NCBI GenBank assembly: GCA_964057225.1 | Contig: OZ059895.1 | Location: forward strand, 6,076,001-6,140,000 | DNA: 64,000 nt | Direction: 5' to 3' | Origin: Auanema rhodensis | Lineage: Eukaryota > Animalia > Nematoda | Shown here: piece by piece, positions 26,343 to 64,000 of the stretch | Numbering within the stretch: position 1 is the stretch's first letter | Layout of the letters: every line of letters starts with the position of its first letter | Program-made: the position numbers and the translations under genes | The notes under the pieces: generated by a model | Seen by the model: the letters and a program-made list of their open reading frames with translations, nothing else | The model's database searches: none | What the model was told of the DNA's origin: nothing

Positions 26343-29300
26343 ATGATCGTTGATCTTGTGAGTGCTACTCAGAGGGAAGATTGGGAACAGACTCGGCAAT
26401 TATTATATAGACATTGGATATCGGAATGTCCTAAGCAGTTCAATCCTAGTCCTGACCAACCATGGGAGTCCGTTAGCGAGAGTGTAATAAGTAAGCTTTT
26501 AATTTTGAATTATATATATATATATATAATTTTACCACAGATCCTTCATTATTTCTTCCTTTAACTGGAGCTCTTTGTGTTGACTCGCAAGTGAACACAA
26601 CTAGCCTCGTTTCATTAAACACAGAAGCTGGCATATCTGCTGAGTCCAGTAAAGCAGGCCATATTTGTGGCCATGTTTTTAAAGTTGGAGAGTTGACTTA
26701 TATGTGCAAGTAAGCTTTTTCTTTTTTTATATATTGAAATTATAACTTTAGGAATTGTGCTACCGATCCAACATGTGTCATGTGTCGCGAATGTTTTATG
26801 CGATCAGAACACAAAGACCATAAATATAAAGTGAGCTCATCGTTTTGTTTTTGTTTACAAGGTTTTTAAAATATTGTTTATTCTGTTATTTGCAGATTCA
26901 CGCTTCTTCGGGTCATGGGTATTGCGATTGTGGTGACCCGGATGCCTGGAAGCAGGGTTATGCTTGTTCAACCCATGCCCCAAATACAAATGATGACCAG
27001 TAAATTATAAATTGATTTTCAATATGATTATGTAAATTGTTAAGCGCTGCGTTTTCTATTCCTGAATCTTTGGAGTCTCGACTTACCGAGTTGTTTTCTA
27101 TAATTCTTCAATACTGCAACAGTCTAGTCTGCTGGGACGATAAAGAAAGTGTTCCAGCATTTCTAAAAAAGTCACAATTTCCGTAAGTTTTTCACATATA
27201 ATTGAATGAAATATAAAATTGTTTTTTTTTATTCTAGTGGGGATGAGGAACCGATTCCAAATATGACGACTTATATGACGGTGCTTTATAACGACGAAAC
27301 TCATACTTATGAAAACGTAATTATTTAAAGTTTTTTCAGTATGCAACTTTTTTTTTCAGGTTATTCGAGCTTTAGAAATGTTCATAAATTGTACAAAAGA
27401 ACAAGCAATGCTTATTGCTACTATTGTTGACAGAGAGGGAAGAAGTGCTGTAAAAATAGGAACTAAGCAAGAGTGTGATAGAGTTAAAGCTGAAATTCAA
27501 GTAATTAAACATTTTTTTTGACTTAATGAATTCTTATTTTTCAGAGAAGAACTTCTCGTGAGCCAAGCAGAAGAACAGAAAAGGCCGGTCCTTTAGATGT
27601 AAAGGTTATGGAAACCTCTTTAGTTGCCCACCAGGCTCATGCTATTAATCTTATGGCATGGACCAATCAGCAACTTGAAATTTGCCGTATGTTGTTTGTT
27701 ATTTTTAATTGTTTTATGTACTTCAATTTCAGCGTTCCTAAGTGAATTAATTGGAAATATTTTGCTGAAAGTTCGAGCTATTGAACCTGACGAAGCTATG
27801 GAAGTTGATGGTGCAACGCCAGAAACATTATTGGTCAAGTTCCTTAAATATAACAGACGAATGTGGAAAGCTGCTAGAGCTAATATTCATCAAATGCTAA
27901 TGAAAACTGTTTTAATGAATCCTGAACAGAAATATGAATTTGCAAAAACATTTTTGAAGGTATGAAAAATATTAATATGTTGTGAAATAAGGAATTTTCA
28001 GCATTATGCTGTTATGTACACAGATTTTGTTGACGATGATCATGATTTGAGTGTATCTATTGTTAGTCTTTCTGTTCAGTTCTTAACTGTGCCTGGAATA
28101 GCAAGGTAATGATCATCAATTATCATATTATTATTGTTATATCTGTAGACGATTGATTTCCGAAGAAAATGCTTTGAGCATAATGCTTAATGCTTTAAAA
28201 GGTCATACCGACAAATATTTAAAAGGTTTGATTTTTGTTTTATTTTATTCATTATATATTCATATATTATTATAGAAGTAGAAGGTAGAAGTCTTCCTGT
28301 ATTTGATTTTACCAATCGCTCTTTCCCTGTTGTATTAAAAAGAGCAATGCATATGATGAGGGACCAAGTGTATGATTGAACCTAAATCATTCCAAAAATA
28401 TATTCATTTTTAGCTATATTCTTAATGCTATTCCACAAAAGGAAGATTGGAATGACGACCTTCGTACAAACTTTGTCGATGGGTTTAAACAACTATTAGT
28501 TTTTCTCAATTGCATGCAGGTCAGAGTTTGGTCACCTTTTGGCTTCAAATATAATGTTTTTTAGGGAATGGATGAAGTTAAGCGTCTTGCTTCTGAACAT
28601 CAATTATGGGAACTTGAATGGGAAACTGCTTTTAATATTCAGCTGCGTATTCAGGAAGTTTTGGGTTTATTTGTACAATGGGCTAGTACAGATGTATTTT
28701 TATAATTTCATTTTGATTACTATTTTTGTTTTGTTTAGCGAATCGTTCATTTACAAGTTTTGAAACACTGTCTGGCTGCCATGAAGTTACATCCCGTTAC
28801 ATCCACTGATACAGCTGAAACTCATATGCTTGTTGAACGTTAGTTTTATTCAACTTTAATTGCCTTTGAAAAGCTATTATTTTACTTCAGTAAACGAAGA
28901 TACATCTGTCTGCAAATCTTTCGATGTACTTCACGGAACAGTTTCCATTCATCAACCACTTTGGCGTTTAGCTGCTGGTCTATTTGCTGTGGGTGGGAGG
29001 GAACTCAATTTTTTCGCGGAAGGTAGTCCGCTGTTTATCAATACTGCTTTAACGCAATTTTAATTAGGCTACGAAGTTTCTGATCCATTAGAGGAGGATG
29101 TTCTTAACTTTGTCAAATCAATGCGACAAGATATTTATGAGAACCCCTTACGGTAAATTTTGTTTTCAATCCTTTCAACAGTTTCCTTAATTTAAGTGTG
29201 GCTGTCTTGTGTGCTCAAGCAAATGCCCAATTATGGAGAAGAAATGGGTTCTCTTTAATAAATCAAATTCACAATTATTATTCTCCATTATGCCGAACAG

Positions 29301-32300
29301 AAATGTTTGACAGGGATTTGCAAATGCTGCAAGTTGGTGCTGCACTGTTTTCTCCTATTGATTTTATTCTGCACTTGGTTTCAAGGTATCTAGAAAACAT
29401 TGAAAAACTTATGTTTTATTTTTTTAGATATCGCTTGACAGAGTGGGCTGATAAGCACCATGACAGCGCTTCTAAATCGACTGCAAGTCCTGTGAAAATT
29501 GAACAAGAGGAAAATAGCAAAGTCACTGTTTCTGTAGCAGAGGACCTACTTACGCTGCTTATTCAAATTTGCGGTAAAAAGATGCTGAATGCTTTTTCAA
29601 TACTGTTTGTGTGATTCAGGCGAAAGATATAAGCCGGGATTAGGACAATGTACCCTTCGAGATCTTCTAAAAAGAGAAGTAATTCATGTATTGTGTATGG
29701 ATGCTCATGCTTTTAGTAAGGTTAGTAAATTTTCAAGTCCGAACCGAATATGTTTTTCCAAATTCTTAATGTTGATGTTTATTTCATTAATTTTTCTATT
29801 GAACATTGATATTTAGATTGTAAAAAAGATGTCTACTGATCCACAATTGGATAAAGTCTCTCTTCATGATGTTGTGAATGAAGTTGCTGATTTTAGGTTT
29901 TCATTGCATCTTTTTTTCTAAAATAAGTAAATTTGTATAGAAAGCCTGTACCTACTTCTGCCGGACAGTTCTATCTTAAAGAAGAATTTTTATGCGAATA
30001 TAATCCATTCTTCTATCACTATTCTAAGAGTGATATTTCTCAAGCTGAGCTTCACCAACAGAAAATTAGATTGAGATTAGATAGGTATTTCCTTTAATAC
30101 ATTCATGAAAATCCTATTTATATGATTTTAAAGAAAACTAATCGCCTGTCCTCCACCTATTCCTTGCGCCTTTGAGCCTTTCTTTGCTCCGATTATTCAA
30201 ATCTTACGAAGCAAGCTATTGATTCGTATCTGTCGTGTAGTACTGGAGCGATCCCTTAAAAGAAATCGCTTTTCAAGTGATCGTTTATTGCATAGAGTAA
30301 GTCTTGACAAAATTCACGTTACGCAGTAAATACTTTAGGCATTATATCTCATTGGTATGGGTCTTCAAGAGCAGGAACGTAGCCCTAACAATGAGTTTGA
30401 TTATATTACAATTGCTACCGAAGAGAATATTTTGAAATTACTCGAGGAAATTCTCGGTTGCAATGGGTTCCCCGCTTTACAAGATCTGGTTTGGTGGACT
30501 GCTACGGTTCGAAGTCAAATTAAATCATGCTTTCATGTATTTTTGTTCAGAAATTCAAGCAAATCCAATGCAAACTAATGATCGCCACATTGCCTGAAGC
30601 TCCGAAAGAAGAAGAAAAAGAAGCTACCGCTCCACCATCAGCTGTTCGTGCAGCCATGGGAGCAAAGTACCGCGAAATGGCTAAGCAACGGGTAATTTGA
30701 TAGTGCTCTAAAGAATACAAAAGTATATTTTTTTTAGATGATGAAGTTGCAAAGTAGCTTCATGAAAAATATGCAAGCTGAGGCACAAAAAACTGATGGA
30801 TCTCAAACAGCTGGCTCTTCTGAATTGCAAGCTCCAGCTTCTGTAATAATTAATAGAATTGATGAAGATGAAGACAAAGCAATGTAAGAAATTGTTTTTT
30901 TTCTTTTTATTTCTTTGTTATTATAGCCCTGTAACTGATAGCGGTTTTCCAATTTGTCTTGGTGCTAAACGTACTAAGATAGCTCATGTTGAACCTCGAA
31001 AGGTCTGTAATTTTCAAAGTTCATTAAATCAATTTATTATTTTAGTTAACGTGCATTCTTTGCCAAGAAGATGAAAGCTCTCTCCCCAACCAAATGAAAC
31101 CATTTGTGTGTGCTGCTTATGTACAAAAGTAAGTGTAGTGTGACAATCACTCTATAACCTCTAAATCATTGCTTTAGGTCCCATTTATTCTCTCAAAAAT
31201 ATTCAGAAGAATCAAGTTCGAAGTGTTTGAAAAATTTCTTTGTGCCTGCTGGTTTGCACACGGGAATTGATGCATCCACATGTTCCCATACTATGCATTT
31301 TGAATGTTTCTCTGCGTAAGCTATTTTTTTTGTATTTTTGAAATTCATTTATTAATTTTTAGTCAGGTTGAAATGTTGGTAAATAAAGAGAGGCAACGAC
31401 CCCGACAGCAGTTGCCATTCACTCCGCGCTTAGTGGATATTGAGGTAAATAGGTTTTAATATTCCTATACCATTCATATTATCTTAGATTGGAGAATATT
31501 TATGCCCGTTGTGCAAACGTCTATCTAATTGTGCTATGCCTATTCTTCCCAGTTTACCAGTAATGAATATTCCTGGGTATTCTATGAAATATAGCTATTT
31601 TTACTCATATATGCTTTTTTTAAAGATTCTCCACTGCTCGCGCCGATGTTGAAGATAATTTTGAGATTTGGTACGGGAAGATTAAGAGTCTTGTGCATTC
31701 TCAGGGAAAGCCTTCGCCTCCTCCTAAGCATAAAACCCATAACAGAAAAAGGTTAGTCGGTTATGGAACAATCAAAATTATTTTAAAAATTGAAGATCCC
31801 ATTCGGAAAGATCACTGTTAGATCTTGCTAAGCAAGGAGATGATCTGTCCAACATGCCAATTGACAGTACTTTGTCCACATCTGTACCCAGTGCTTCTAC
31901 AATGGAGTTACTACTTGATTCAGAAGATCCTAGGGTCATCGCTTCAAATCCTCATACTCACTCTTTTATAAATATTGGTTTGTTTTTATTATTGATAATG
32001 TCTTATACTATTTTTTCCAGAGCAAATGGATGTTCATTCAGAATCAGGTGAGAATCATAACTGTTTAGATAATTTTCGTCTCTTTGGTGTAGATATGGAA
32101 GGTACAAATCCAGATGGAAGTAGAAGGGAAAGAAAGGATCTCAAGTTTTCTATGAGCTTTGCTAATCTTCTTCGTAATATGCCAGGAATAGCATCTATTC
32201 TTAGACAGAATAAAATGTAAATTTTATTTAGATATTTAGTTATTCAATTTTCATTTAAGTACTAGTCCATCTTATGAAAAATATGCTGAGATGATCAGAA

Positions 32301-34362
32301 CATTCTGCAAGACATTAACACGAGTAAGTTATGAAAGCAATATAATTACGAAACTTCTTATTAGAATGTTGATAACAAAAATAAGGAGTTATTCGAAGAT
32401 AGAATGCGTGGATTTTTATGTGCTACTACTGTGTGGCAGAGTACCGCTCATGTTTTAAGATCAACATCGGCCAACTTGAAGCTTGAAAATAAGCCTCTTT
32501 TCGGTGCTTTGAATACGAGACAGGTATAAGAACATCTATATAATCTCGGATACGCATAATTATTTTAGCGCGATTGCATCCTGGCGATGAGTCGTCTCTG
32601 TGCTGCCATGTCGTTCTCATTACAACATATGCATGAGCATACTGTTCTTGCCCTGAAAGCTTTGCTAGGTAGACCACCTGTCAATGTACCTTCACTAACA
32701 ACATCGCCAGCTTCTCCTGAACCCACTGCTATGAGTCCTCCTTCTTCTCTTCCTACTAGGTAGGGCATTTTTCTTAACTCTTAGTAATTCTTTGGTATTT
32801 CAGTCCTGTTGTTTCCAACAATCCCGAATCGTCAGGTCCCAAGTTATCTAGTCCTTTAATCCAATTTTTATTCAATACACATACAAAAGTGGCCAGTCCT
32901 ATTGCCTCTGTTAATCTTCTTCATATTGATATGCTCAGTTTAGCTGTATGTATTATTTTCAATTTTAATCTATTTGAGTTTTTTGAGATTTCTTTATGTA
33001 TGTGCATTGGCTGGACGTGGAACAGTGGGACACAATCGTTATCTCATCCTCGAAAAGAAAGAGAAATGATTCCTGATGGATCACCTGATGAGCAATACTG
33101 CGTCCGTCTGTGCTTATTGGGTTTTTACTTCCAAGTATTTATTTTTATATTTTCTTTAGATTCAATTATGTTTTCAGGTGTTTGTTGCTTTCGATGATAA
33201 TACCCAGGATGATGAAAAAATGGAAGTAGACGAGATTTTAGAAGAACGAGTGAAACAATTGTGGATGGCCGCTAAGCCTCACGAAGTTCCATTAGTGAAT
33301 TCTAAGAGTTTATGCATGGTTTGTATTTTTTTCAAACTCATTATAAATTCTTAACTTTAAGCGATTGAAAGAAGCTACCTTAAATATGCTAAGACCAATT
33401 GCTTTACTCTACTATGGAATCAGCATGGTCGATCCCCCTGAGGCTTTAAAAGGTTATTAGATTTACTCTTTATTCTCATAGTAATTAATTTTTTAGATCC
33501 ATCTCTTGACGAGTTTGAACCTCTCTGTAGATATCTCGGTTTACCTACCAGTCTTGTTGAGCTTCTCAGTGGCCTCATGATCGAAGAGCTTTTTGAAATG
33601 TTTGCTTAAATTTGTGCAGTATTTTGTATTTAAATTTTTAGGTGGTCCATTGCTGTTCCTTCTGCTCTCGAGAGAGGAGGTCTTGTACGTCAACCTGTGC
33701 AGCCTAATTTATTGGTGAACTTGCCTGAAGATTTTAGTGAGGTTATCCAATGGGCTACCGCATTCAGGTTTTTTCTAAATTTTCCAATGTTTACTAATTT
33801 TAATTTTTAGATGTCCTACTGTGCCATTTGACGAATCCGCTTCCAATGTACCAACATTATGTCTTGTTTGTGGAGATATTTTGTGTTCTCAGAGCTATTG
33901 TTGTCAGAAAACTGTAAGATTTAAGAATCATCTTTTTTTTTTCAATGGTAATGCTTTCAGGTAGGAAAGGATTCTGTTGGTGCATGCCGTTATCATATGG
34001 ATCATTGCTCTGGTTCCATGGGAATTTTCTTAAGGTTTTTTTAACAAGATTTGTTCATTTAATTATTCCAACTTTAGGATTCGTGATTGCTCTGTTGTGT
34101 TAATGACATCCCGTATACGTGGATGTTTCAGACCAGCTCCATATGTTGATGAATTTGGAGAGACCGATCAAGGATTCAGGTATCCAAAATTTTGTATTAG
34201 ATACTCAGTTCTGTTTTCAGAAGGGGAAATCCTTTGAGGCTTAATGCCCAACTTTATCAAAAACTCCACAGGTTATGGTTAACCCAAGGTGTCAGTGAAG
34301 AGATTGTGAACCAGTATGAAATAGACCCTCGAAACCTTCAGTACGACTGGGCTCACTTCTAA
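26343..34362 (+). CDS. ubr-1: N-end-rule E3 ubiquitin ligase UBR1
   Basis: UBR box ([42 protein letters not shown]), ClpS-like VLYNDETHTYENV, LWRRNGFSLINQ, RING (CILCQE..CSHTMHFEC..EYLCPLCKRLSN) and C-terminal PYVDEFGETD..RGNPL. Stop TAA at 34360-34362. Confidence 0.96.
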
Positions 34363-34668
34363 ACTAAACATCTTTTCAATTCTTTCTTCATCTACCAACT
34401 ATTTCTTAATAATCTTAGAGAATCTATAAACAGAATTTTAATTCTCAACTTACTTCCCTGTGGTGTCGTAGATAAATTTATTCGGGTATGCTTTTTCCAT
34501 ATGTAGCGTCATATATTTTTCATTACGGTACCCACTGCATTGATGGTAATGTGCATAGCTCAATCTTACTCAAAACCTTACTATCCATACTCTTTTCATA
34601 ATAATACTCTCAATGAGTCAACTAAAGTTTGCTATCTTAATAAAAAAAATTTATTTAAAGAGAGAATT

Positions 34669-35250
34669 TCAATTGTCCATTATTTGCTGTAAATATTCCT
34701 TTTGTGTTTGTTCGATTTGCTTGACGGCAGCAGCTTCAGCCCTTAACCTTTCTAGTTCTACCTGCCGTTCACGAATAACTATCTGAATTTATAGAAGATA
34801 TATATATATATTTATATATGTAAAGAATTGAATAAACTATCTTCTTAAAAACAAATAACTAACTTGTGTTTGTTGAAAATCTGTCATTTTCCTTCTACTA
34901 GTAGATTTCAATTCAGTTCGTGAAGCCATGGCTTTCAATTTTTCGGCTTCCACAAATGTAGCTAGCTGAAAATCATAGTTTCCGGGGGGCGTTTTGATAA
35001 ATGATTTTACTTCTTCCATTGTTTGAAAAAGTGCATCCGCAGTTGCTTTAAAAGAAGAAAGCTGTGTTGCGAATTCTTTGCATTCATTTTGAAGTTCTCC
35101 ACATATTTCGGTTACTTCTAAAAAAAAATGTATAAATGTGTTAAACCTAGACAACAGACCAGGATTCATTAATCGTAATCTATTCAGCTCGTCAATGTGA
35201 ATACCAGTTCTTTCAAGAATACTATTCAGTTTACTATCACCAGAAGACAT
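34669..35250 (-). CDS. ift-20: Intraflagellar transport protein 20
   Basis: GIHIDELNRLRLMNP..VEAEKLKAMASR..IRERQVELERLRAE..QKEYLQQI matches IFT20, and an X-box lies upstream. Confidence 0.92.
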
Positions 35251-35343
35251 CGCTGACTTGCACAGAAAAAGTAACCCAATAATGAATAAAATAGTAGCAG
35301 GATTGTAATTTGGTGACTTTAACCAAGCTTCGATTTATTTTGA

Positions 35344-35357
35344 GTTTCCATGGCAAC
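35344..35357. promoter_or_regulatory. X-box (RFX/DAF-19 site) for ift-20
   Basis: GTTTCCATGGCAAC is a canonical 14-bp X-box, 94-107 bp upstream of the ift-20 ATG, the usual position for nematode ciliary genes. Confidence 0.9.
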
Positions 35358-36134
35358 CTGAACATTGAAACGAAATATTCAATAGTTCAAAAAGTGAATA
35401 TATAAGAATTCAAATAAAGATGGACTGAAAACATAAACATAATAAAAACAATAATATTATGTCTCACAGTTATTCTGTGAACTTGTGGACCATATGTTAT
35501 TATCAAGGGCATTTTACGGGCATTCATTACTGTGAGTATATTTCTGTTTGTTTTTAATTTTTTCAAAATTTACGTACATGTTAGGAAGTGATAAAATATA
35601 CAAGGCACTATTCTTACATATTAGATGTTCTCGAAACTTGCAGTGAAATTCTTTAAATAGTTAGCTTATCAGTTTCAAAGTTCTATATTTCAATTTAAAA
35701 AAAACGTTCATGACTGTTTAATGTTTTCATCAACACACGCTGGGCACATTTCTAACAATGTAAAATCGTCAAGATGAGGAATATTTACATTTGCATTTGT
35801 ATATAGCAAATACATTTACAATTTTTGCTTACACGACTCTTGAAAACGCTCCATTGCGTACTGCGTTTGTTTTTTTTTAATTAACATGTTCCAAACGTGA
35901 ACCCAAATACTTTCTCTTTTTTTATAATCATTATTGTTAATGATTGGTTTTTGTTTTTTTTATTCTGAATAGTTTAATATAATGTTTCAATTCATATTTT
36001 TTGATCAATTATAATGCGTTAAATTAAAGAAGTTTAGTTTATAATATTTCTAAAATTTGGTTTTATTCTGGAATATTTTTGTCACTGTAAATGCAAATGT
36101 AAAATTTATACATAATTATTTTATATAGAGAGCT

Positions 36135-44460: not shown

Positions 44461-44483
44461 TTTAAATAATACGAATGAAAGAA

Positions 44484-47260: not shown

Positions 47261-48999
47261 ATGAAGACCTTTATTCTGTTGTCGTTATTACAAGCAGTTA
47301 GTTCTGTAGTTGTTCCTTTGGACAGTTCTAACATCGATGGAATTTTAAGTACGTTATTAATTCATAGAGAATATGAATCTTTTATTTTTAATCCGGTTAT
47401 TAATTAACTACTTCAGATAATAATGAGATTGTTTTTGTTAATTTTTATGCTGATTGGTGTAGATTCTCTCAGCAATTAAAACCTATTTTCCTAGAAGCAA
47501 GTGAACTTTTCAATGTAAGAATGTTCCCCCAAATGCCATATAATTTAGTTTTATAGAGTTATCCCGCGGGTAAAGTGGTTTGGGCTTCCGTTGATGCTGA
47601 CCGCCAACGTAAGATATAATTTCTTGATATTTTCCAAAAATGTTGTATTGTAGCTGCAATTGCCACAAAATATCATGTTAATAAATACCCAACCTTGAAA
47701 CTTTTCCGTAATGGGGAAATAGTTAAGAAGGAATATAGGTACATTGTCATTTATAAATATATACTTCATTCATATTTAAGAAGTCGTCGTTCTGTAGATG
47801 CATTGTCTGAGTTTGTTAATAAGCAGCTTAGCACAAGCTTGAAAATTGTTGAGAATCCAGAAGATTTAAAACAAAAGCTTGAGGTATACTAAAGTTTGTT
47901 AATTATTTTTAATGTTTTCTTAATAGGCTGGAAAACGAAACGTTATTGGTTTATTCCCTACTCTTGATACTATTTCTGCTGAGAGCTTCAAAAAAGTAAC
48001 TTCTTTTGCCTTATCAATTATTGATCCCTTTTTTTCAGATTTCATCCATCTTACGAGAAGATTGCAACTTCTTTGTAGGACAAAATCCAGGGTTTGCCGC
48101 TCAGTTGAACCAAGGGCCCAGAATTGCCTATCGTGCTCCTAATGTAAGTCAATACGTGGTATTATATATAAATATATTTTTTTAATTTAGTCCAATGATG
48201 AACAATATTTCTCTGGAAATCTAAATGATTTTGATCAAGTCAAGTAGGCTCATTTTTGATATAATGACAAATGAATTTTAATATTAGGTCATGGATTAGT
48301 GAGAAATGTATTCCTCTTGTAAGGGAAATTACTTTTGAAAATGCCGAAGAACTCACAGAGGTGTTGTTTGTTTGAGCTTCTTTTACAATGTTGATGATTA
48401 TAGGAAGGACATCCATTCTTGATTCTTTTCAAGCACCCTGATGACAAGCATAGCGAAAAAATTTTCACTGATTCTGTAATCAGAGAAATACCAGATCAAA
48501 AAGGTGACCACTGAACATTTATATCTTCATGATTGTGTATCTTTGAAAAAAAAACTTATTTTATTGATTTATAGCCTCTGTGAATTGTCTTGTCGCTGAT
48601 GGAAAGAAATTTGCCCACCCACTTCACCATTTAGGCAAAACGGAAGCTGACCTACCTGTAATTGCAATTGATTCATTCAGACATATGTATCTCTTTCCTA
48701 ACACAAACGATTTGACGTATGCTATCTTTTTTCTGATTACAGTTTTTTTTTAATTTAAGCACTCCGGGAAAACTAAGACAGTTCGTTCTTGATTTGCACA
48801 GTGGTAAGTTGCACAGAGAATTCCATCATGGACCAGATCCAGTTCAAGCTGATGAGAATCAGGTAAGTTCTTGCAAATATGATGACCAGACTATTTCTTA
48901 ATTTAGGCCCCATCTGAGACTCAACCACCTCCAAGTGTTTTTGAAAAGTTGAAACCTTCTCAAAATAGGTATACTTTATTGGATAAGGATGAGTTGTAA
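47261..48999 (+). CDS. ERP44: ER resident protein 44 (thioredoxin family)
   Basis: Signal peptide, VNFYADWCRFSQQLKPIF (CRFS motif), VREITFENAEELTEEG, HSGKLHREFHHGPDP and a C-terminal KDEL. Confidence 0.96.
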
Positions 49000-49380: not shown

Positions 49381-50943
49381 ATGCATGTGGGATGTATGAC
49401 TAGCCAACTACTTAAGGGGCAGGTTATAATCAGATCTAATCTTAGGTATTTCAATTTTTCTCCTTTACCTTCTTGTTTTTTCTTTCCTCTTTAGAAAATT
49501 CTCTGTGCAGACAAGACGAAAGAAGAATGTCCCTGCATTTGCATGTGATAAGATCAAAGACATGCAGGTATATTAATTTTCCTTAGCATCACCAAATCTT
49601 TTAACAGCATGAAATTGCTGCCCAATTCGTAAATGATGCTATACCAAGATCTGTTTCAAATGAATCTGAATCACAGTTCACAGCCAATCTAGAGAGAATG
49701 GCAAAATATTATTTCGAACAAGTGAGACTTTGCCGATGGTGTTCAATTCTCATTACCTGTCCTAGGGAGGAAAAATGTTTCGACCAACAGTTGCACTTGT
49801 CATGGCTAAGGCTTGTAATTTATCGTTCGATCACTCCTCATCTTCGAGAATTTCGTAATAATGAAATCTTATTCATGAATTCTTATATTGTTACTGTTTT
49901 AGATTAGAGTGTGGCGCCGATGATATCTCATTGAATCAATATAAAATAGGTATGATTAGTGAAATGATTCATACTGCTAGTTTGGTACATGATGATGTCA
50001 TTGATGGTGCTGACACTCGACGGGGAAATGCTTCCGTTAATGCCGTTTGGGGTAATAAAATGGTAAATAACGGTGAACATTTTCAAATAATATTTTTTTA
50101 AATCTTCAAGGCAGTTTTGGTGGGTGATTTCATTCTGGCTAGAGCAACACAAGTATTGTGCTCTATCGGAAGACCTCACGTAATTTCTGTTATGGCATCA
50201 ATTATTGAAGATCTTGTATTGGTACGTTTCTTAAACAATACGTAAATGAGAATGTATGATATGCGATTTCAGGGTGAATTCATGCAGATGACAGCAAAAT
50301 CTGATACGTCTGAAGATTTACTCTCTAATTATATGCAAAAAACATATAGGAAAACAGCTAGTCTTTTTGCCAATACATGTAAAAGTGTAGCTATTTTGGC
50401 TGGTAGTTTTATTATTTGAATATTTATCTTTATACACTATTTTCTCAGAAGGAGACAATGACTTACAATTGCGTTCTTACGAATATGGGCGTCACTTAGG
50501 TTTGGCTTTTCAACTTATTGATGATCTACTGGACTTTGTTTCTTCTGCTGAAAACATGGGAAAGCCTGTCGCCACAGATCTGAAACTAGGTAATTTGTTT
50601 TCTTAATTAATTCATCATAATAAGATTTATAGGATTATCAACAGGACCCGTAATATATGCTTCTTATCAGTTCCCTGAATTGTGTACTCTAATGTCCCGC
50701 AAATTTTCGATGCCGGGAGATCCTGATTTAGCTCGTAACATTGTTTTAAACTCAGATGGTTTACAAAAAACTAAGGCATTAGCTGAGCATCATGTTAATG
50801 AAGCTATAAAATTAGTGCGTTTATCTATTATAATTGATTTCATTACCATTATATTATTTTAGGCTGGAATGTTCCCCAATGTTGATGGTGTAGCTGATGT
50901 GTTAGCTGAATTTGCTATTTCTCAATTAGATCGACAATCCTAA
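49381..50943 (+). CDS. coq-1: Polyprenyl (decaprenyl) diphosphate synthase subunit 1
   Basis: [54 protein letters not shown] and [11 protein letters not shown] (FARM/SARM motifs). Confidence 0.94.
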
Positions 50944-51728: not shown

Positions 51729-52381
51729 ATGCGTCTCGCTCTGAGGCTGCTTAGACCTGCTGCTAATCAAAATGTAAGAAATCCTAAACTTTGGCAAGAT
51801 CCTGTTCTTGGATATTTCGAAACTCACGGTGATCTTTAATGAAAATTATGTTAATATATGAATGTATTGCAGGAAAAACTGAGTTCGTAGCTGGACAAGA
51901 ATATAACCTTACTGACAATGAGAAGAAAGCTGTATTATGGAGATACAGAGTAAAAGAGATTCTGAAAAAAGAATACCTTCGCCGTGAATATGACCCTGCT
52001 AACTTCAAATATAAGGTTTGTATTTCTTGTTATGTACGCATATATATATAAATGGTTTAGGAAGGAGTTACCATGGATCCTGCTATGTTCAGATGGTACT
52101 CTGCTGATATGACTCAGGCTGAATTCTTCCGCTTTACTCCAAGATCTGTTCTCTTATATGTAGGTTCAGTGTTGGTTGCTTTCTACATTTACACTCGTCT
52201 TATGTTTATCTCAGGGGTAAGGAACGACTTTTAAAGAAATAATTTTATTTATATTTTAAAGGATAAGTCTAATGAGGCTTGTTTGGATGGTGAAGTATTA
52301 TGGTGGGATAGACAGCAAGGCCGTACTCTCATGACTGCCGGATCTGGTCACTTTGCTCCAACGATCGGAATCGACTTCTAA
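51729..52381 (+). CDS. nuo-6: NADH:ubiquinone oxidoreductase subunit NDUFB4/B15
   Basis: Mitochondrial presequence-like start, EYNLTDNEKKAVLWRYRVKEILKKEYLRREYDP..DPAMFRW..FRFTPRS, and a single TM segment. Confidence 0.85.
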
Positions 52382-52587: not shown

Positions 52588-55500
52588 ATGAGTGACCTAA
52601 AATTGGCATTGAAAAACGCCAAGGTTCTTCTATCAGAAAGTAAAAATCAGGAAGCTTTGGACTGTCTGCAGGTCTTGATATCGATTAAGTTGATTCATCT
52701 TGGAGTGTTCAGGAGTTTCTGAATAATGGTGACAGTAATTATATGCTTTTCTGCTTTGGTGCATTAGCTCTGTTTAATTTAAAACAATATGAGAAATCAA
52801 GAGTTATGTATGAAAAGGTTGAAAATGAATAATATAAGTTTAGAATGTTGTGTATTATGTTCAGGCTTTAGCTCTCGATTGTTCTTCACCTACCGCTTGG
52901 CAAGGCTTATATAAGTTATATGAAGCTGATTCTATAGAAGGTAATCAACGTGGTGTTGAAGTATGTGAGAATTTATTGGGATCTTGGTATGGTAATATGT
53001 CAATACTTTGTCTCTATATTTTTTGAAGTCAAAATGAAGAAAAAAGAGAAAGTATTATGAGTACACTTCGACGAATTTATTTTGTTCTTGGTAATTATGA
53101 ACCTCTAATTGAAAATATCGGAACAAATATGGATGTAATAGTTACAATTATTGAACGTACATCCAACAAACTTATGTCTACTACAAACAAGAAGTTGGTA
53201 AGTTTTGAAAGAATTATAAAAATTGTTTGTTGTGTCTTTTCAAGTTGGATGCAGCTTTTAATGTGGCTAAAGATCATTTGGATAGTTATCCTACTATAAG
53301 AATTTCATACTTCAAATACTTGAAATCAACGGTTTGATAAAATATTCTAAAACTTGCTATTATTTATTTAGAATAATCCTATACTGAAAGAAGAAGTTTT
53401 GAGATATTGCAATAATATCACAGATGATGAGATTACTGATGAAACTCTAGTTGATATATTGGCTGGAGTATTGTGCTCTAGTATGTTTGATATTAAAATT
53501 ATTTTAAAGTAATAGCCATTTTCAGCTTATTTGAAAACTGGAAAAACAGACTGCACTTTGTTGAAAAAGCTTTGCCCAACAAACAAACAGTCCGTTGTCG
53601 CTGTTGCTGTCAATGTTTTGAAAAACATAATGTAAGTGAAAAGATTACACATTAAAATTGTTGAACAAAATTGTTTTAGGATTAATAGCATTCAAGAAAT
53701 GCTAGCATTTATGAGAAAAATTCCTCCATCTTCCATCGATGGAATTCTTGTGCCATGCGTAGCCATTAGACTATATAATACATTTGAATACTGGGATAAA
53801 GTTATTGAAGTAGATTCAGTTTGACATATGTTCTATTAGCTTTTATTTTTTGTTCAGCTCAGTAGGAAAATAATAGAATCAGATTCAGAGGAAGATTTGA
53901 AAAATATTGCTATATGGTTTGCAATAAGAGGATTCTTGCTTTCTCGTAATAATGAAGAGGCCTTGAAGTTAGTTGATTACTATTTATCACATTCTATTTA
54001 ATATTTAGGCTTTATGAATTATATCAGCCAGTTTTACTCGATGAATTTCTTACTGAAGCTGTTGCAGTAATGAATTTAGAAGGGGAAAAATTTGATGCAT
54101 TTCTTTCGTCTCTAAATGAAAGTCAATCTATCCGTGCACGTGTAGCTAGAGCTATTTATTTGGGTAAATCAGATACTGTGATCAATGATGTACGCCAGTT
54201 GCTTAAAAGAGAGGATGTTCTTGATTCTGACTATCTTTTGGCTTCAGTTACTTTATTCGAAGCTGGGAAAGTAGATAGCACGAAAGAGTTCGTTGAAGTA
54301 ATAATTTTGGTTCGATCATACCTGATATATTATTAATCAAATTAGGCTGCTCGAAGATATCCTTTTAATGCTCGGATATTTTATATGCTCAGTATGATAT
54401 TATCTCAAAAGAATGTCAAAAAAGCTCTTGGTTTGGCTGAAAGAGCTTGTCAACTCTTCCCAGAATGTGAAGATTATGTGAAGCTATATGAAAGTGTAAG
54501 TATGTTTCTATTGTTGCAACTTCTAAATCGTTCCATTCAGTTACTCGAAAGATCCAATTTTCCTTATGAAACTAGAATCAAAGTTTTGAGCCCCCTTGTT
54601 AAGAAGAATTGTATGTGGGCCTTGATGCGATCTATAGGAATGTATTATGAATTAAAGGATCATCAATCGGCACTACGTTGCTTACAAATGATAATTCGCT
54701 CAGATAAAGACAATTTATGGGCTTGGAGTTATTTATCTCAAGTTTACTTTGCAACTGGAATGTATTCCTCATCAGTTTCGGCATATAAGGAGTGTCTAAG
54801 AATCAAACCAGGATCTAATTTTATAATCCCGGTATTCTGCTTTGTAGTCTAACTCCCCTGAACTATTCTTTCAGCTTTTACAAATCTATATACGTTTGGA
54901 GAAACATGCTGACATTGAAGAGTTATTCAAAACTGATTGCAAAATTTTAAATGCTCAAGCGAGAACATATTTTGAGTTAGCCAGAGCCGAGGTATTGCTT
55001 AAGGATCATGTAGATTAGATTGTTCTCAATTTTCTCATTTTAGTACTATTTTCAACTTTCTCGTCAAGAAAGAGGGCTGCCTCAACGAGAACATCTCCGA
55101 GAAGTCATTCGTATACTTGCTATGCTAATTCATGAGAAGTACGCAAAAGCAAGAGCTTTCAAATTACTTGGAGATACTCTGATGATGATTTCAAAAATAT
55201 CTGAGAAATTCTTACCATCTCTTGAAGTCTGTCACATATCTTGAAATGATATTTAAATCTCGAAAGCATACTTTAGATTCCCGTGGAGTGGAATTGTCAT
55301 GATGCTGTGGGTTGTTTGAAAGCGTCGTGCTCCTTTTACTACTCTTGTCTTCGCGAAAATGATACCAACTCTCTTGTATACATTGACCTGGTGCAAGGAT
55401 TGCTGTTAAGCTCATCAATTTCTAAATCACCATCTTATGCTGAGAAGTTTGTTCTTATTTTAATAAAACAATTTAGGTTTGATATTTCAGTGCTAAAAAG

Positions 55501-56936
55501 ATTATTGTTTTACTTTTAAAACGTCCGTTACCTGACCGTTTGAAATCAATTGTTTGGTGCCTGCTGGCTGAAGCATACAGACTCACTGATGAGGCAATTG
55601 ATAAGCAAATTCACGCCCTTATTAGAGGGTTGCAAATCAGCAAAACCAATGCTCAAGCATGGCTGCGACTGGGATTAGTTTACTTGCAATGTGGTGAAGT
55701 TGGTCAGCTAGTACAAAATTGGGTTGTAATCCAGTATTTCAGGGTACCTTAGCATTCAAAGCTTTCGAAACATCATTGAAGCATGATCCCAAATCAGCTG
55801 CGGGATGGTGTGCTTGGGCCCTACAAGCTGAGCGGCAAAATGTCCATGACGAGGCATACGAGATGTACAAACAATCTCTTACATGGGGTCCTTTGGTATC
55901 TTGATTGTTGAAAGCATTTAATAGATTATTTTAAATTTAGATTACGTCTGTTTCAAAATATACTGGTTATTTGTGTGAAAAAATAAGAAATGGGTTTAAG
56001 TTCGACCCTTCAATTATCAAAATTGATAGTGCAATAGTGGAAAGCATATCTGGTTTTATCCTATTGTTGTTTTCAGAATATAACTTAGTATTTTTAGATT
56101 TTCGAAGTGTTTCTAAAGAGAATATACTATATGCTGGAGTTCTTAACGAACTATTTGGAAACTATGATAAAGCTGTGGAATGCTTCGCTATGGTTGATGA
56201 AAACGGTGTTAATCATAACAGGGCAAAATTGTACATCAATAATATTTTGATGTTCAGCGGATGTTATTCATATTCTTACAGAAAGCAATGTAATTCTACT
56301 CCTATCCCGTGCCAGTTTGAGTTGAACAACTTAAAGAAACTTGTGGAATCGGATACTGATCAACTTATCTATATATGTCGTGAAAGCATCCCTATCTATG
56401 ATAAACTTTTCAACGAATTTGAGGTGAGTCATGAGCTGATTCATAAATTTAACTTTATATTTTGAAGAATCCTCATGTTAATGAATTGTCAATGGCATTA
56501 GTCGAGCGAACTATCCATATCCCTCTACTTATCTCGATGATTCTCTACAAAAATTGGGTTAAGTTTCAAATTCTGTTACAATTCTATAACTTTCAATTTT
56601 AGATTCTTCCCAATCAATTGGTTTATCAAATGCATGCTCTTCGTCCTAAACATGAACTAATGGATTTCTTCCCTACCATTGTTCCTTTAGATATATTGTG
56701 TGAAAATGACTATTTGGAAAACAGTGGTGAAGAACCTTTCCGATCGAATCATTTCATTGCCAAAGTATACTTTCTTATATTAGTTTTGTTAATCTTTTAT
56801 ATTTTATTTTCAGAATATTTTGGAAATTTTAAAAATACGCAGAGAAAATGCATTACCAGCAATGAAAGCGACTGAAATAATAGCTCAAGAAGCTGCTGAA
56901 TCTGTATTAGTTTCTGCCGATGTGAATGATGATTAA
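52588..56936 (+). CDS. TTC37: SKI complex TPR subunit TTC37/SKI3
   Basis: N-terminus LKLALKNAK..ALDC..NYMLFCFGALAL..YEKALALD..TAWQGLYKLYE matches the TTC37 N-terminal TPRs. Further TPRs follow (LRCLQMIIRSDKDNLWAWSYLSQVY, AQAWLRLGLVYL). Confidence 0.85.
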
Positions 56937-57269
56937 TATAAATGTTTGGCTCACTTCCATTCGATTTCTTTCGTACAGAATGTCTGTCTTCGCGGATATC
57001 AATATTTCACCTTCCTTTTATTCGGTGTACTCCGTATTCTTTCCTATTCTCGCGTCTCCTGTGTGATCTAGTTTGCGCTTTTCGCAACTCTGATCTCTCC
57101 TTATTTACGTTTTCTTTTTCACCTTATATAGGTTGCTGCGATAGTGACCGGCTGGAACTTTGCTTGTCCGTTTTCAGCTTCTCATGTTTCTTGTTTTTCT
57201 TATTTTTTCTTTCTATGTTTTTATTTTTGAGTGGTTTCAGTTAATTGGGTTTCTGAAGGCTAACTGAGA

Positions 57270-59518
57270 ATGTCTTCCGCGATTGATATTGAACAGCAAA
57301 TCTCGCAACAAGGTGATTTAGTTCGCAAATTAAAATCTGATGGAGCAGAAAAGGTTCAAAGCTTAGCTTTTCTTTTTAACTTGTTAGTTTCAGACCACAA
57401 TAGAGCAGGAAGTTGAAAAACTGAAAAAGCTAAAACTTTCTTATAAGGAAGTTACTGGCAAAGATATCCAACCAGCTGGTGGAAATCAACCACGCCAGAA
57501 AAAAGAGAAGGTGAAGCTAAGAATAATCGAAATTGTGCAATATACTTTTTGAAGGCCGCTAAAGCTCCTGTTAAAGAGGAGAAGAAAGCTGATGGAAAGA
57601 AGCAAAGTAAGCTTGGTATCTCTATCAAAAAAGATGAAAACTACTCTGATTGGTACAGTGAGGCGAGTATTAAACCAAGGTGTGCTTGAATAATGCCATT
57701 CTTTTTAGGTGATTACCAAGGCTGAAATGATTGAATACTATGACGTATCTGGTTGCTATGTTCTTCGTCCCTGGTCTTATGCTATTTGGGAATACATCAC
57801 TGTGAGTTTTCTTCATTTTATATATTTCTATCTTGTACATTTAATTAAAATATGTATAGGATTTCTTCGATGGGGAAATCAAGAAGCTCGGTGTGAAAAA
57901 CTGTTACTTCCCCATGTTTGTAAGTAACGCAGCTCTTGAAAGAGAAAAAACACATATTGCTGATTTTGCTCCAGAGGTAGTGACGAACTATTGAAAGATC
58001 ATTATTGAATATATTTATGCAGGTAGCTTGGGTTACTAAAGCTGGAAGTTCTGATATGGCTGAGCCAGTTGCAATTAGACCAACTTCTGAGACTGTTATG
58101 TACCCTTCATACAAGAAATGGGTTCAGTCTCACAGAGATCTTCCAATCAAACTCAACCAATGGTGTAACGTTGTGGTTGGTCTTCCACTGCTCAGAGTCG
58201 AACGGTCAATCTATGATTTTAGCGTTGGGAATTCAAACATCCAACTCCATTCCTGCGAACTCGCGAGTTTCTTTGGCAAGAAGGACACACAGCCTTCTCC
58301 AATCCAGCAGATGCTGAGAAGGAAGTTTTCCAAATTCTGGATTTGTATGCTAGAGTGTATACTGATTTGTTAGCTATTCCTGTTGTGAAGGGACGCAAGT
58401 CCGAAAAGGTACTTGGCCATTCGAGTATAAAGTAGAATCGAAAATTCCAGGAAAAATTCGCCGGAGGAGATTTCACTACTACCGTAGAAGCTTACGTTCC
58501 TTGCAATGGTAGAGGAATTCAAGGAGCTACCTCTCATCATCTCGGACAAAATTTCTCCAAGATGTTCGATATTTCTTTCGAGGAGCCAACCACCGGAAAT
58601 AAGGTGAGTCATCATTTACGTTAAGTCACTGAATTATTTTTTAGGCTTTCGCTTGGCAGAATTCATGGGGACTTTCAACAAGAAGTATTGGTGCTATGGT
58701 TATGGTTCATGCCGATGACAATGGATTAGTTCTTCCACCTCGCGTTGCAGCTGTTCAAAGCATCGTTATACCCGTAGGAATTACTGCACAAACGACTGCT
58801 GAAGAGAAAGAGAAGCTCACTAAAAAGGTTGAAGATATCACAGAATCTCTTCTTGGTGATGATATTCGTGCTGAATCTGATTTAAGGTTTAATTTCTTTA
58901 CTTCCTTATTCTCCATGTCGTAGTTTAGAGACAACTATTCCCCAGGTTGGAAGTTCAACTACTGGGAATTGAAGGGAGTTCCAATTCGCTTGGAACTTGG
59001 ACCCAAAGATTTGGCTGCTAATCAAGTTACCGCTGTTATTCGTCATAATGGACAGAAAAAGGCGTTAAGCTTAGATAACTTAAATGCTACCATTAAAGAC
59101 CTCCTTGAGCAAATTCACAGTGATATGTATCAAAAGTGAGTGTAAATTAATTTATAACATTTTATACGATGGACTTACTTGTTAGGGTTCTTCTCATTCG
59201 CGATGCTCACAAAAAAATTTCCACTGATATTATTGAGTTCAAGAAGTTGTTAGACGATAAGTATGTCTTGCTTTCTCCATTCTGTGGTGAACCATCCTGT
59301 GAAGACGAAATTAAAAAATCTACAACTCGTGAAGACGGAGAAGGAGCTCAAATGGGAGCTAAAACATTGTGCATTCCACTTGAACAAGTGAGTAAAATTA
59401 ACGTATTAGCACTAAACACATATATTTTTAGCCATCCGAGGCTCTGCCTTCAAAATGTATTCATCCATCTTGCACTAGGAAGCCAAAGTCTTTCGCATTG
59501 TTTGGCCGCAGTTATTAA
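57270..59518 (+). CDS. pars-1: Prolyl-tRNA synthetase with N-terminal WHEP domain
   Basis: WHEP domain [28 protein letters not shown], then [13 protein letters not shown]-type motif ([13 protein letters not shown]), [27 protein letters not shown] and C-terminal LFGRSY*. Confidence 0.97.
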
Positions 59519-59798
59519 TTGGGTAGCGTGCTCTATTGCGATTTTCAAGGGCGGTCAAATTTTGCTTTCGAGCGAAATTTGTCATCTCAAAAATCTCATA
59601 TCGTTTTCTTCTATTAAACATTTTTTATCATCATTGGGTGATTGGTTGTTTTTGAAATTTTTTAAAATGTTTTTATGGAGTAAATATTCAATTCAAATGA
59701 TGTACATTTTTAATTCTCATGTCTTTCCATAGATATTCTAATCATTTTGAGAAATGATGATTTTAGTCCTAATACACTACTATACCTAATTCAAAATA

Positions 59799-60237
59799 AT
59801 GGCTCAGCTTTTCAAACCAGCCAAAGGAGATTTTTGTGGGTTATGCGGCTCCTTGTTACCTATGCCTGACGATGCACCATCTGATGTAATTTGTGTAGTG
59901 TGCGAAACTTCTTGGGTAGTGAAAGGTTTTTATTTGAGTGCTGACCCTCATTCAAAGAGAATCCTTTAGCTAAAAAGAATATATTGGTTTCCCGCTCCAT
60001 TAAAAGTTATGAGCCAGCTTATATTAGTGCAGACATAGAAGGAGAGGAAAATTCTGTTGTAGATCATATATGTTCAAAGTAAGTTATAATCTCACCGGCG
60101 CCTGAATTTTATTTTTTCTCAGATGTGGCCACGATAAAGCTTCCTATTCAACCTTACAAACAAGATCTGCTGATGAAGGTCAAACAGTTTTTTTCACTTG
60201 TATGAAATGTAAAAAAAAAGATATCGAATACTCATAA
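59799..60237 (+). CDS. rpoa-12: RNA polymerase I subunit RPA12
   Basis: FCGLCGSLLP..CVVC zinc ribbon and C-terminal CSKCGH..LQTRSADEGQTVFFTCMKC. Confidence 0.95.
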
Positions 60238-60402
60238 TTGTATATGCAAATTTACATTATTTTTCCCTTATAATTGTTATATTGTTATTGTTGTCTTTGA
60301 AGAAGTTTTTTTATTCATATATTATTTTTTTCTACAGCGGTTTTTTTACCGTGTATACTTCTTTTTTTCTATGTTTAATATTTGTAATCATATTTTTCTA
60401 AG

Positions 60403-61396
60403 ATGTCTCGCAGCGCTGGTTTCGATAGACACATTACCATCTTCTCACCAGAAGGACGTGTATACCAGGTAAATTAAAAAATTCGAGTTGAATCTCTATC
60501 TGTATATTTAAAGGTTGAGTATGCTTTCAAGGCTATCAGTTCTACAAATCTTACTGCTATAGCTGTTAAGGTTTGACTTAAACTGTTATCCGTTCTATCA
60601 AACAGTTTAGGGTGTCGATACCGCCGTTATTGCTGTTCAAAAGCGAGTGCCTGATGGTCTCATTGTTGCTGATTCAGTTTCCTCTGTTTACCAGTTGAGC
60701 CCCACAATTGGAAGCTGTGTGATCGGAATGATCCCTGATGGAAAGTTCCAGGTATGTAATATATTTTAATTTAAATTTATCTGTTTGTAGGTTAACCGCG
60801 CTCAAGCCGAAGCTGCAGAGTTCAAGTATAAAAATGGATATGATATGCCTTGCGAGCTTCTTGCTAAGAGAATGGCTGACAAGAATCAATATTATACTCA
60901 GAATGCTGAAATGAGAAGTCTTGGATGTGGTGCGATAAATTAGATATTTTCATTTGTAAAAACATCTTTAATTTCAAGCTCTGTTGATGATCTCCTATGA
61001 TGATGAAGATGGTCCATGTGTATTCAAGGTTGATCCTGCTGGATATTACAGAGGAATGAAGGCCGTTGCTATAGGAGTTAAACAGGTAAGTATAGTAATA
61101 CTGTATTTTTGGAAACATTTCTTCTGTAGACCCCCGCAATTAGCTTTTTGGAGAAGAAAATTAAGAAAAAGTCCGACTACAAGAAGGATGAAGCCATTGA
61201 GCTTGCTCTCGAAACTCTTCAGACCAGTCTTGGCATTGAAATTAGAGCCAAGGATGTTGAAGTTCTTGTTGTAACTGAAACCAACCGAAAGTGCAAGTAT
61301 GTATTGAGTTTTTTATGGTACTAATTTAACCTATTTAGCAAATTGACAAATGAACAAGTTGAAGCTCACTTGAACGCTATAGCCAACCGTGATTAA
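60403..61396 (+). CDS. pas-1: 20S proteasome alpha subunit (PSMA6/alpha1 type)
   Basis: [59 protein letters not shown]. Confidence 0.96.
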
Positions 61397-61592
61397 ATAG
61401 TACTTCCACAAGGGATTTATAATACGGTTTTGTTGTAAGCTACGGTGATGATTAATGTTCTTTTAATGTATTCTTTGTCCACTCATTAAATTATTCTTTC
61501 TTTTTATTTGTTTTATTTTCTTGAAATGATGGTTGATTACCTATTCTATCTGAATTGTAGTTAATTATGTAGTTCAAATTGAAATTTCTCAG

Positions 61593-64000
61593 ATGTCTGA
61601 TGAATCTGACATTGATGAGCTTGCTCACGAGCAGCTTCTAAGAAGCATTAAAGATGGGCATTCAAAACAGGTGCTACTAAGATTAGTTTTGTATTATACT
61701 CATCAATCTTTTCCAGAAATCTATACGTAAAACTATACATAAGGTTGATGCCAAAGATTTGTTATCTGTTGTTAAAACTGAAAGAAAATCCTTATCCGTT
61801 GCTAAAAAGAAAATAGAAGATGAAGAGAAAAAGAGATCTAAGAATAAGTCCACAACTGCTATTGCTGCACCAATTCACAGACAAGAATTGGAAAGAATAC
61901 AAGGAGAAGTAGGACTCGTAGAATTAAAGTATCAATTGCTGTTGCAGTTTACATAAACTGAATTTTTTATTTTAGAAAAGATCTTCAAGTATGGAGAGAA
62001 GTTGTTGAATCCAATAGATTAGCTGACCAATTAAGTTTTCCATTAAATCAAGAGAAAGTTCTTTCTTCTGATACTGCGAGCATGAAAGTAGAGAACTTTA
62101 AGGTGTAGTTTATTTTTATTTAAACTTGATAATTTGTGTTATTTCAGCCAAAAACGGACATGGAGAAGGAGCTGGCAGCACTTGTTCAGACTAGTAAACA
62201 TAACTTGACTAATGAAACAATATATACACCTGCTGAGCTAGAAATTATTAAAGCTATGAATGTAAAAGAGGTTTGTATTTCAAATATAATTATTTATTTA
62301 GTTTATATCTTTTAGGCCAAAGCTCGTTTAGATTCATTGCAAAGAATGAGAGCTCTTATAAGTTATCGTGAAGCTAAGTTCAGATATGCGGCTAAAATCA
62401 AATCCAAAGGGTAAACAACTAAATTTTGATGGCTTTTTCAAATCATTTATTGAAGATACCATCGTTTACTGAAGCGACAGAAGAGAAAACAGCTAGTCAA
62501 GGAATTCGATGAATTATTGATAAAAGATCCCGAAGCAGCTAAAGAAAAACTTAAAGAATTAGATACGCAACGTATTTTGGAAAGAGGTTCTCTGAAGCAT
62601 CATGCACGTAGTAAATTCCAACAAGAAATTCTGAAACATGCCGGTCGAGATCCCGCTGCCAAGAAAGTTTTGGAGGAGCATTTAAGGTTTATATTTGGAA
62701 ACGTTCTGTATGAAATTGAATCGAATTTAGACTAGGGAGAGAACTACGAGAGAAGATTACTCAAGAATCTGATAGTGAAAATGAAGATGAAGGGGAACAG
62801 GCCAAAAGCGTTGCAGATCTCATTAAGGTATTACTTTTTGTCGACCATACGGCATTTTTTAAATTAAAGTCTGCTGCCCTTGCTGCTGCCCAATCTGATG
62901 AGCCTTCACGACTAGCATTTGATGAAGAAGATGAAGCTGTAACTAAGCAAAAACTTTATGAGATGAGAGCAGCTAAACGAGCCAGTGCCCAAGCATCTAA
63001 AATAAAGAGTGATGGAACGGTACTTAACTTAATATTTTATTCAAACTCATGTGGGTATACGTTGCAGATAGCTAAAGTAGAAAACGTTTTTGAAGAAGAT
63101 AATGCTTGGGATGAACCTGTTGTCGAAAAGAACGAAGAGCCTACTAAGTTGAAAACTAAGAAGAAAACACCTAAGAAAAGAAAATTAGAGAAGAATCTTG
63201 AAGAAGCAGCAGCAGCAGAAAATGGTTATTTTAGTTTTTTCCATGTAAAGCATATTTACTTCGAACTTTAGAAACTGAACCTGTATCTGTGAAGGATGTT
63301 GATCAAATATTCGAAGAAGGAACAGATGTTCTTATTAAGAAAATGCGGGATGTAAATGATTATCATAGTGAAAGAAATTGGATTCAAATTTTATAGGAAT
63401 TTGCCAGTGAAAAGCAAAGCGCTACACCCTTAAAGAAGAAAAAGAAAAAAGTTGTGAAAAAAACCGATGAAGAACCTAAAGTTGAAGAAGAGGTTGATGT
63501 AACGTTGGATCCAAAACACTTCCTTCAAGTGGAAACATCGAAAATCATGAAAGTTGCTGCCGATATGGATGATCAGCTCAATGAACTTGAGGACGAAGGT
63601 GTGGTATTATTTCGTAATACGTTCAAGTTATCATATTTTCAGATCAAAGTAAATTGATTGCTGAAGCATTCAAAGATGAAGATGTAATTGGTGAATTCGA
63701 AGAAGAAAAAGAAAGGGTACGATATCATTATATTTAAGGCAGTAATCTGAATGTTTCATTAGGTTGAAGAAGGTGAAAAGGGTAAAGACATTGATTTAAC
63801 CTTAAAAGGTTGGGGTTCTTGGACAGGACCAGGAACAACAGAAAACAAAAGAAGAAAACAGTTTATAATCAAAGCTGCTGAAAAGAAAAGAAAAGATAAA
63901 GGAAAATCAGCAGTTATCATCAAAGAAAAGGCAGAACATGTTTGTGAACTTCTGAAAACTTCGTTATCATGCTCTTTTTCAGCCTATCAACAAGATGCAA
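61593..64000 (+). CDS. UTP14: U3 snoRNP/SSU processome protein UTP14 (continues beyond window end)
   Basis: RMRALISYREAKFRYAAKIKSKGYHR, RILERGSLKH, AFKDEDVIGEFEEEK and DLTLKGWGSWTGPG. Confidence 0.93.

Follow-up and report, generated by a model that had tools for sequence, protein, structure and literature searches.

How is the 3' end of an intron of some 44 nt chosen when the base in front of its terminal AG is often not a pyrimidine? This question is raised by a stretch of 64,000 nucleotides from the nematode Auanema rhodensis (GenBank assembly GCA_964057225.1, contig OZ059895.1, positions 6,076,001 to 6,140,000 of the forward strand), the whole of which we call the window and number from its first letter. 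A preliminary description, made from the letters of this DNA, had noticed frequent AAG 3' splice sites (acceptors), near-fixed intron lengths and very degenerate 5' splice sites (donors), and had proposed that the AG is picked by its distance from the donor, as if by a ruler, with relaxed U2AF specificity at position -3. We find the acceptors, the lengths and the donors to be much as described, and we consider, with a probability of roughly 0.7, that they belong to ordinary U2-type GT-AG mini-introns of minimal length with a loosened -3 position, and that no new distance-measuring mechanism is involved.

The exact position of part of these introns is given by RNA. Spliced transcript contigs from four runs of one 2019 study (X1-X4), which share ~60% of the sampled words of 57300-63200, were placed on that ~6 kb only of the window, which has a G+C content of 33% throughout. 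They gave 27 joints on the + strand, 15 of which were listed exactly, and joint coordinates were adjusted for alignment ambiguity before the intron ends were read. At the 15 exact joints there were 14 GT-AG introns and one GC-AG intron, with lengths of 39-58 nt and with TAG, CAG and AAG acceptors in 11, 3 and 1 cases, respectively; a GT or GC start, an AG end and precise removal are what is expected of introns of the major (U2-type) spliceosome. A further six introns fitted loose ends or piece edges of the contigs. Loose ends back, for example, a 40-nt CAG intron at 57354-57393, and likewise the AAG intron of pars-1 at 57511-57554, where the loose end of an X4 contig before position 57551, AAAAAAGA, is the end of the upstream exon. 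Together the 21 RNA-supported introns comprise 13 TAG, 5 CAG and 3 AAG acceptors, and in pas-1, where the contigs reach depths of 271-623, two of six introns end in AAG. Transcript contigs are blind to low-level alternative or failed splicing.

Across the whole window, introns were called with a dynamic-programming gene finder that trained itself and scored codon log-odds together with position weight matrices for donor and acceptor. The -3 column of the acceptor matrix was masked and the length prior was flat from 36 to 80 nt, which kept the calls free of bias from the -3 base or from a narrow preference in length. The gene finder recovered 14 of the 15 RNA-verified introns, all ten AAG introns of the preliminary description and the GAG acceptor ending at 32987. 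In the RNA-covered stretch it predicted 26 introns vs the 27 RNA joints; at least one joint is unmatched by the model there, and could be an alternative, untranslated-region or non-AG intron. A plain enumeration of GT...AG pairs bridging open reading frames had been dropped, as it gave thousands of alternatives yet lost 5 of the 15 verified introns. All statistics below refer to 197 introns of at most 80 nt, taken from genes scoring at least 40.

Among these the base at -3 was T in 101 (51%), C in 62 (31%), A in 32 (16%) and G in 2 (1%), giving an AAG share of 16.2% with a 95% confidence interval of 11-22%. This share was unchanged where the reading frame dictated the outcome, AAG being found in 9 of the 49 introns for which donor and acceptor had a single solution and in 13 of the 77 in which the acceptor was unique (17-18%). 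When in-frame and stop-free YAG alternatives were sought within 18 nt on either side of the donor and 24 nt on either side of the acceptor, none existed for 27 of the 35 predicted AAG or GAG introns, while eight did have one (for example 46172-46116 on the - strand). The ten intervals named at the outset all read GT...AAG, on the + strand and at 42-49 nt. The frequent AAG acceptors are therefore genuine: an RNA joint at 60930-60978 and 27 frame-forced calls speak against the use of nearby YAG sites in their stead, and within the window their share is well above the few percent that would have been unexceptional. What does need correcting is the emphasis, as AAG is a substantial minority but the commonest acceptor is TAG, followed by CAG.

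In coq-1 the AAG junction is fixed because the coordinates of Pfam family PF00348 continue without a gap over 50063-50110, polyprenyl_synt position 81 falling on residue 52 of the 53 in the upstream exon and position 83 on the first residue of the downstream exon. Two in-frame CAG alternatives exist for this intron, and either would alter protein length there. Exons were run singly in these Pfam searches and not as joined spliced proteins, and domain continuity pinned the coq-1 junction only, those exons of erp44, ubr-1 and nuo-6 being too short or too divergent for placement to one residue. The GAG acceptor suspected at 32987 also held up, as it was predicted with -3 masked and has no YAG alternative; the sole nearby upstream AG is likewise a GAG, at 33 nt. 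For the ubr-1 intron at 29153-29196, the CAG at 29 nt keeps the frame, as had been claimed, and brings in no stop codon, and the only arguments against its use are length (the minimum seen is 38-39 nt) and its poor tract, CAACAG.

The acceptor in front of these AGs is still a recognisable motif. Its usual form in the window is TTTTAG, T being present in 86% of introns at -5, in 72% at -6 and in 63% at -4, and the exon that follows starts with a purine in 73%. Compared with the composition of the intron interior (A 0.32, C 0.12, G 0.105, T 0.455; 78% A+T), the -3 position shows C at 2.7x, T at 1.1x, A at 0.5x and G at 0.1x. This order, C>T>A>G, keeps the canonical order of acceptor efficiency, CAG>UAG>AAG>GAG (PMC11802449), which indicates that -3 specificity is weakened, not lost. 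Compensation elsewhere in the AAG introns was considered and ruled out, as there was no enrichment of G at +1, lengths were equal (medians of 45, 44.5 and 44 nt for AAG, CAG and TAG) and the T-tract score was hardly higher (0.88 for AAG, 0.78 for CAG and 0.56 for TAG). The only hint of it was a T-tract moved by 1 nt (TTT-N-AAG, for example TTTCAAG or TTTGAAG), which was present in 17 of 32 AAG vs 54 of 162 YAG introns (P 0.044), a pattern that reads like an extra A placed inside the TTTNAG motif.

Donors in the same introns fell into 81 distinct hexamers, with G at +5 in 49%, and 22 of the 197 (11%) had neither a purine at +3 nor a G at +5. The degeneracy that had been noted here is real, and GTTTTT, GTTTAA and GTGCGA are all RNA-verified. 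GC donors made up 2% in the gene-finder model.

Intron lengths had a mode of 43 nt, with the bulk at 42-47 nt and a minimum of 38 nt, in agreement with the near-fixed length first reported. They were distributed as 63/70/64 by remainder on division by three, so multiples of three are not depleted, and 20 of the 197 introns could be retained with the local reading frame left open. Inside the introns, AGs occurred at close to background density (0.022-0.034) as far as 37 nt from the donor, after which their density collapsed. Strong TTTTCAG-type decoys at 19-33 nt from the donor were skipped, and TTTTTCTAG at 31 nt was passed over for a weaker downstream site. Because such excellent decoy sites near the donor are skipped, a minimum donor-acceptor distance of between 33 and 38 nt is real. 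Two of the decoy introns, at 27317-27359 and 56053-56097 (Table 1), are good natural substrates for spacer work.

Table 1. Introns of the window referred to in the text; positions count from its first letter
Intron	Position	Strand	Length (nt)	Intron ends	Remarks
pas-1	60930..60978	+	49	GTGCGA...TTTCAAG	weak donor; RNA joint in all four runs; predicted with -3 masked
pas-1	60469..60513	+	45	GTAAAT...TTTAAAG	predicted with -3 masked; no in-frame YAG alternative; lies outside the 15 RNA joints listed exactly
pars-1	57511..57554	+	44	GTGAAG...TTTTTGAAG	no YAG alternative
pars-1, GC-AG	57663..57708	+	46	GCGAGT...TTTTTAG	RNA joint in all four runs
utp14	62411..62455	+	45	GTAAAC...TTGAAG	no alternative solution of any kind; RNA pieces restart at 62455, with 1 nt ambiguity
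coq-1	50063..50110	+	48	GTAAAT...CTTCAAG	junction set by Pfam PF00348 continuity
erp44	47739..47780	+	42	GTACAT...TTTAAG	predicted; no YAG alternative; upstream exon of the Thioredoxin family
nuo-6 (NDUFB4)	52217..52261	+	45	GTAAGG...TTTTAAAG	predicted; upstream exon matches NDUF_B4, E 4.6e-13
ubr-1	27000..27044	+	45	GTAAAT...TTGTTAAG	sole frame-keeping GT-AG solution; upstream exon corresponds to the end of the UBR box
ubr-1	29153..29196	+	44	...AAG	in-frame CAG at 29 nt skipped
ubr-1, GAG acceptor	32946..32987	+	42	...TTTTTTGAG	predicted with -3 masked; no YAG alternative
	4582..4628	+	47	GTTTGA...TTTCAAG	unique solution
second GAG acceptor	24200..24241	-	42	...CTTTTTTGAG	frame-forced; no alternative solution
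decoy intron	27317..27359	+			identical TTTTTTCAG at 23 and 43 nt; frame-held model uses the distal copy only
decoy intron	56053..56097	+			near-perfect TGTTTTCAG at 24 nt, too near the donor for use

The preliminary description had asked whether the AG used is the first one beyond ~40 nt. With the limit set at 38 nt this was true for 192 of the 197 introns, and five introns skipped AGs lying beyond it. We compared this figure with introns whose interiors were shuffled over 300 rounds, the core of the donor and the final seven bases being kept fixed, and here 179±3 of 197 (91%) obeyed the same rule, with a maximum of 187, so that the excess in the real introns is significant but small (z ~4). 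The first-AG rule is thus mostly a by-product, because little more than the T-tract separates the floor from the intron end. Introns of at least 50 nt numbered 24, and between 38 nt from the donor and a point 6 nt short of the acceptor they held 7 AGs vs 12.9 expected (P 0.057). What stands of the proposed ruler is the sharp distance floor together with a -3 position far looser than in UUUUCAG; the outcome of the shuffles, the T-tract and the preserved order at -3 speak against the remainder.

No convincing branch-point motif was detected in the 197 introns, either by k-mer enrichment or from the positions of TRAY- or CTRA-type motifs. A mild peak of A lay at +28 to +30 from the donor (-15 to -17 when counted from the acceptor), and a set of 197 introns does not tell which of the two ends it follows. 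C. elegans likewise has no branch-point consensus, and one branch there has been mapped 14-20 nt from the acceptor (PMC4484395).

We propose that the acceptor would still be read as a short T-tract adjoining AG, with a motif of TTT-[T>C>A]-AG in which -3 is weakly constrained. Under intron definition the two intron ends would be paired with each other. The branch, lacking a consensus sequence, would probably lie ~28-30 nt past the donor and some 16 nt ahead of the acceptor, and the first reachable AG downstream of it would then be used. An intron of ~44 nt would have essentially one AG in reach, and AAG, or rarely GAG, could splice cleanly there because a minimal intron offers no competing AG in the reachable zone. 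AGs less than ~35 nt from the donor would be unusable for steric reasons whatever their motif, and AT-biased mutation in the absence of competition may have carried AAG to ~16% and TAG to ~51% of acceptors.

Several points weigh against this interpretation. The evidence is from a single 64-kb window, with RNA support for 21 introns only, and the gene finder made at least one acceptor error, predicting an intron at 61086-61153 with a GAG acceptor where RNA gives 61086-61129 with TAG, which was mended before the statistics were taken. The contrast with C. elegans at -3 rests on qualitative statements in the papers and not on numeric frequencies, and the branch position and the role of U2AF (whose genes lie outside the window), like the evolutionary cause, are what we infer. 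In addition, the first-AG rule predicts the used site better than the best motif score, which picks it in 168-175 of the 197 introns as against 192, and it tops all 300 shuffles; some avoidance of AG, or some dependence on distance, must therefore exist beyond the motif.

This last result would favour a true molecular ruler, in which ~38-50 nt are measured from the 5' splice site and the first AG is then taken, the small U2AF subunit having no discrimination at -3. Likewise, even perfect TTTTCAG decoys go unused when they lie nearer the donor, the enrichment of A at +28 to +30 relative to the donor appears in two length classes, and in 8 of 11 introns of 60-96 nt there is no AG between 38 nt and the acceptor. 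However, an agreement of 91% is expected by chance from minimal length and a T-tract, and selection purely by distance would place no sequence requirement upstream of the AG and does not predict the conserved T-tract or the order C>T>A>G that we observe. The five introns that skip AGs beyond 38 nt are at odds with it, the depletion of AG in introns of at least 50 nt is borderline (P ~0.06), and the length distribution is far narrower than that of the first random AG past a threshold, from which it follows that selection acts on where the AG lies as such. We therefore regard a ruler as unlikely, and give no better odds to a variant with the branch ~28-30 nt from the donor, the first AG past ~38 nt being used and the small subunit of U2AF being blind at -3. 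If a fixed reach of this kind were true, A. rhodensis would offer a natural, genetically tractable animal model of length-measured splicing.

A slightly less probable explanation again is pure drift with C. elegans-like splicing factors, whereby AAG and TAG acceptors would be slightly deleterious and would have built up under AT-biased mutation and weak selection. The A+T content of the introns (78%), the canonical hierarchy at -3 and the parallel degradation of the donors, with their 81 hexamers and 11% lacking both a purine at +3 and G at +5, would all fit this account. Nevertheless, AAG introns are cleanly removed in contigs of the housekeeping genes pas-1, where coverage is deep, and pars-1, with the proviso that low-level mis-splicing is invisible there, and a share of 16% without compensation suggests real tolerance and not a burden. 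Finally, the possibility that the boundaries are misplaced and the real acceptors are nearby YAGs is largely refuted and very improbable, since against the one acceptor error of the gene finder and the eight of 35 AAG or GAG calls with an in-frame YAG alternative stand the RNA joint at 60930-60978, two more AAG introns consistent with RNA, domain continuity in coq-1, 27 of 35 calls that are frame-forced and an AAG share that does not change in the unique-solution subsets.

Minimal U2-type introns with a loosened -3 thus remain our preferred reading, and some further features of the window were noted beside them. On the + strand a single RNA contig runs unbroken over 59432-60237, from the last pars-1 exon (predicted stop at ~59518) through ~280 nt and into the next predicted gene, which has its ATG at ~59799 and introns at 59926-59969 and 60079-60122; pars-1 and this gene may form an operon-like pair, or the introns may lie in the 3' untranslated region of pars-1. 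The ubr-1 model contains a doubtful intron of 1951 nt with a GAG end near its 3' end (34180-36130, + strand), and the 3' part of the model is unreliable; a weak antisense open reading frame lies inside that intron (34837-35250, - strand). The region 12000-20000 is gene-poor and without a confident gene model, shows a strong purine skew on the + strand (GC skew 0.15-0.20, AT skew 0.16), and contains small repeats only, namely (AAG)n at 18684-18791, a 12-mer array at 19248-19303 and (TC)13 at 17373-17398.

Nematodes are the textbook case of a rigid UUUUCAG motif, and this rigidity is not clade-wide, since in a close rhabditid relative half of the acceptors are TAG, a sixth are AAG and donors are very degenerate. 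With gene predictors trained on C. elegans, many exon boundaries will be put in the wrong place here, and our own model erred in 1 of 26 cases. The introns also provide a natural test of how far positional constraint can replace sequence information in minimal introns. Auanema and Tokorhabditis can be made transgenic (PMC12100158), which makes it feasible to test minigenes reciprocally with C. elegans.

Set against known systems, the finding is a quantitative shift and not a new mechanism. In the literature searched we found no paper describing the acceptor spectrum of the Auanema lineage; the published A. rhodensis genome, in which introns have a median length of 47 nt and short exons are numerous, is described without mention of splice sites (PMC6469403), and its figures are compatible with the introns of the window. 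The 3' splice site of C. elegans is UUUUCAG/R, bound by both subunits of U2AF (UAF-1, UAF-2), with U at -5 the most conserved base (PMC4889670, PMC2762039), and in some nematodes C is found 'almost exclusively' at -3 (PMC11802449). The window resembles C. elegans in having a T-tract against the AG, T at -5 as the most conserved base after the AG, a purine as first exon base, no branch consensus and very short introns. Unlike C. elegans, it has no dominant C at -3 (T 51%, C 31%, A 16%; C 5, T 13 and A 3 among the RNA-supported introns), its donors are much more degenerate and its length mode is ~43 nt.

The model in which 3' splice sites are chosen by scanning and competition (Smith et al. 1989 and 1993, cited in PMC4484395) would be matched in that the first AG past the putative branch region would be used, AAG works where it has no better neighbour and AG tends to be depleted just upstream. 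The scanned zone here is only ~10-15 nt in introns of 44 nt, so that distance from the donor and distance from the branch are indistinguishable. The introns are also like the minimal introns recognised by intron definition in Drosophila and ciliates (PMC5762160, PMC5014332), with their sharp lower bound, a pile-up just above it and tolerance of weak motifs. They differ from these in that retention would leave the frame open for 20 of 197 and multiples of three are not depleted, and in that the T-tract is still informative, making the acceptor more than a bare AG. Relaxed splice codes have been described in Globodera, which is rich in GC-AG introns (PMC4901422), and in tunicates, where non-canonical introns occur with a divergent U2AF (PMC13326754). 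As in those lineages, the loosening in A. rhodensis is clade-specific, occurs in a compact genome and misleads gene predictors; unlike them, the window keeps the terminal GT and AG, and only -3 and positions +3 to +6 are loosened.

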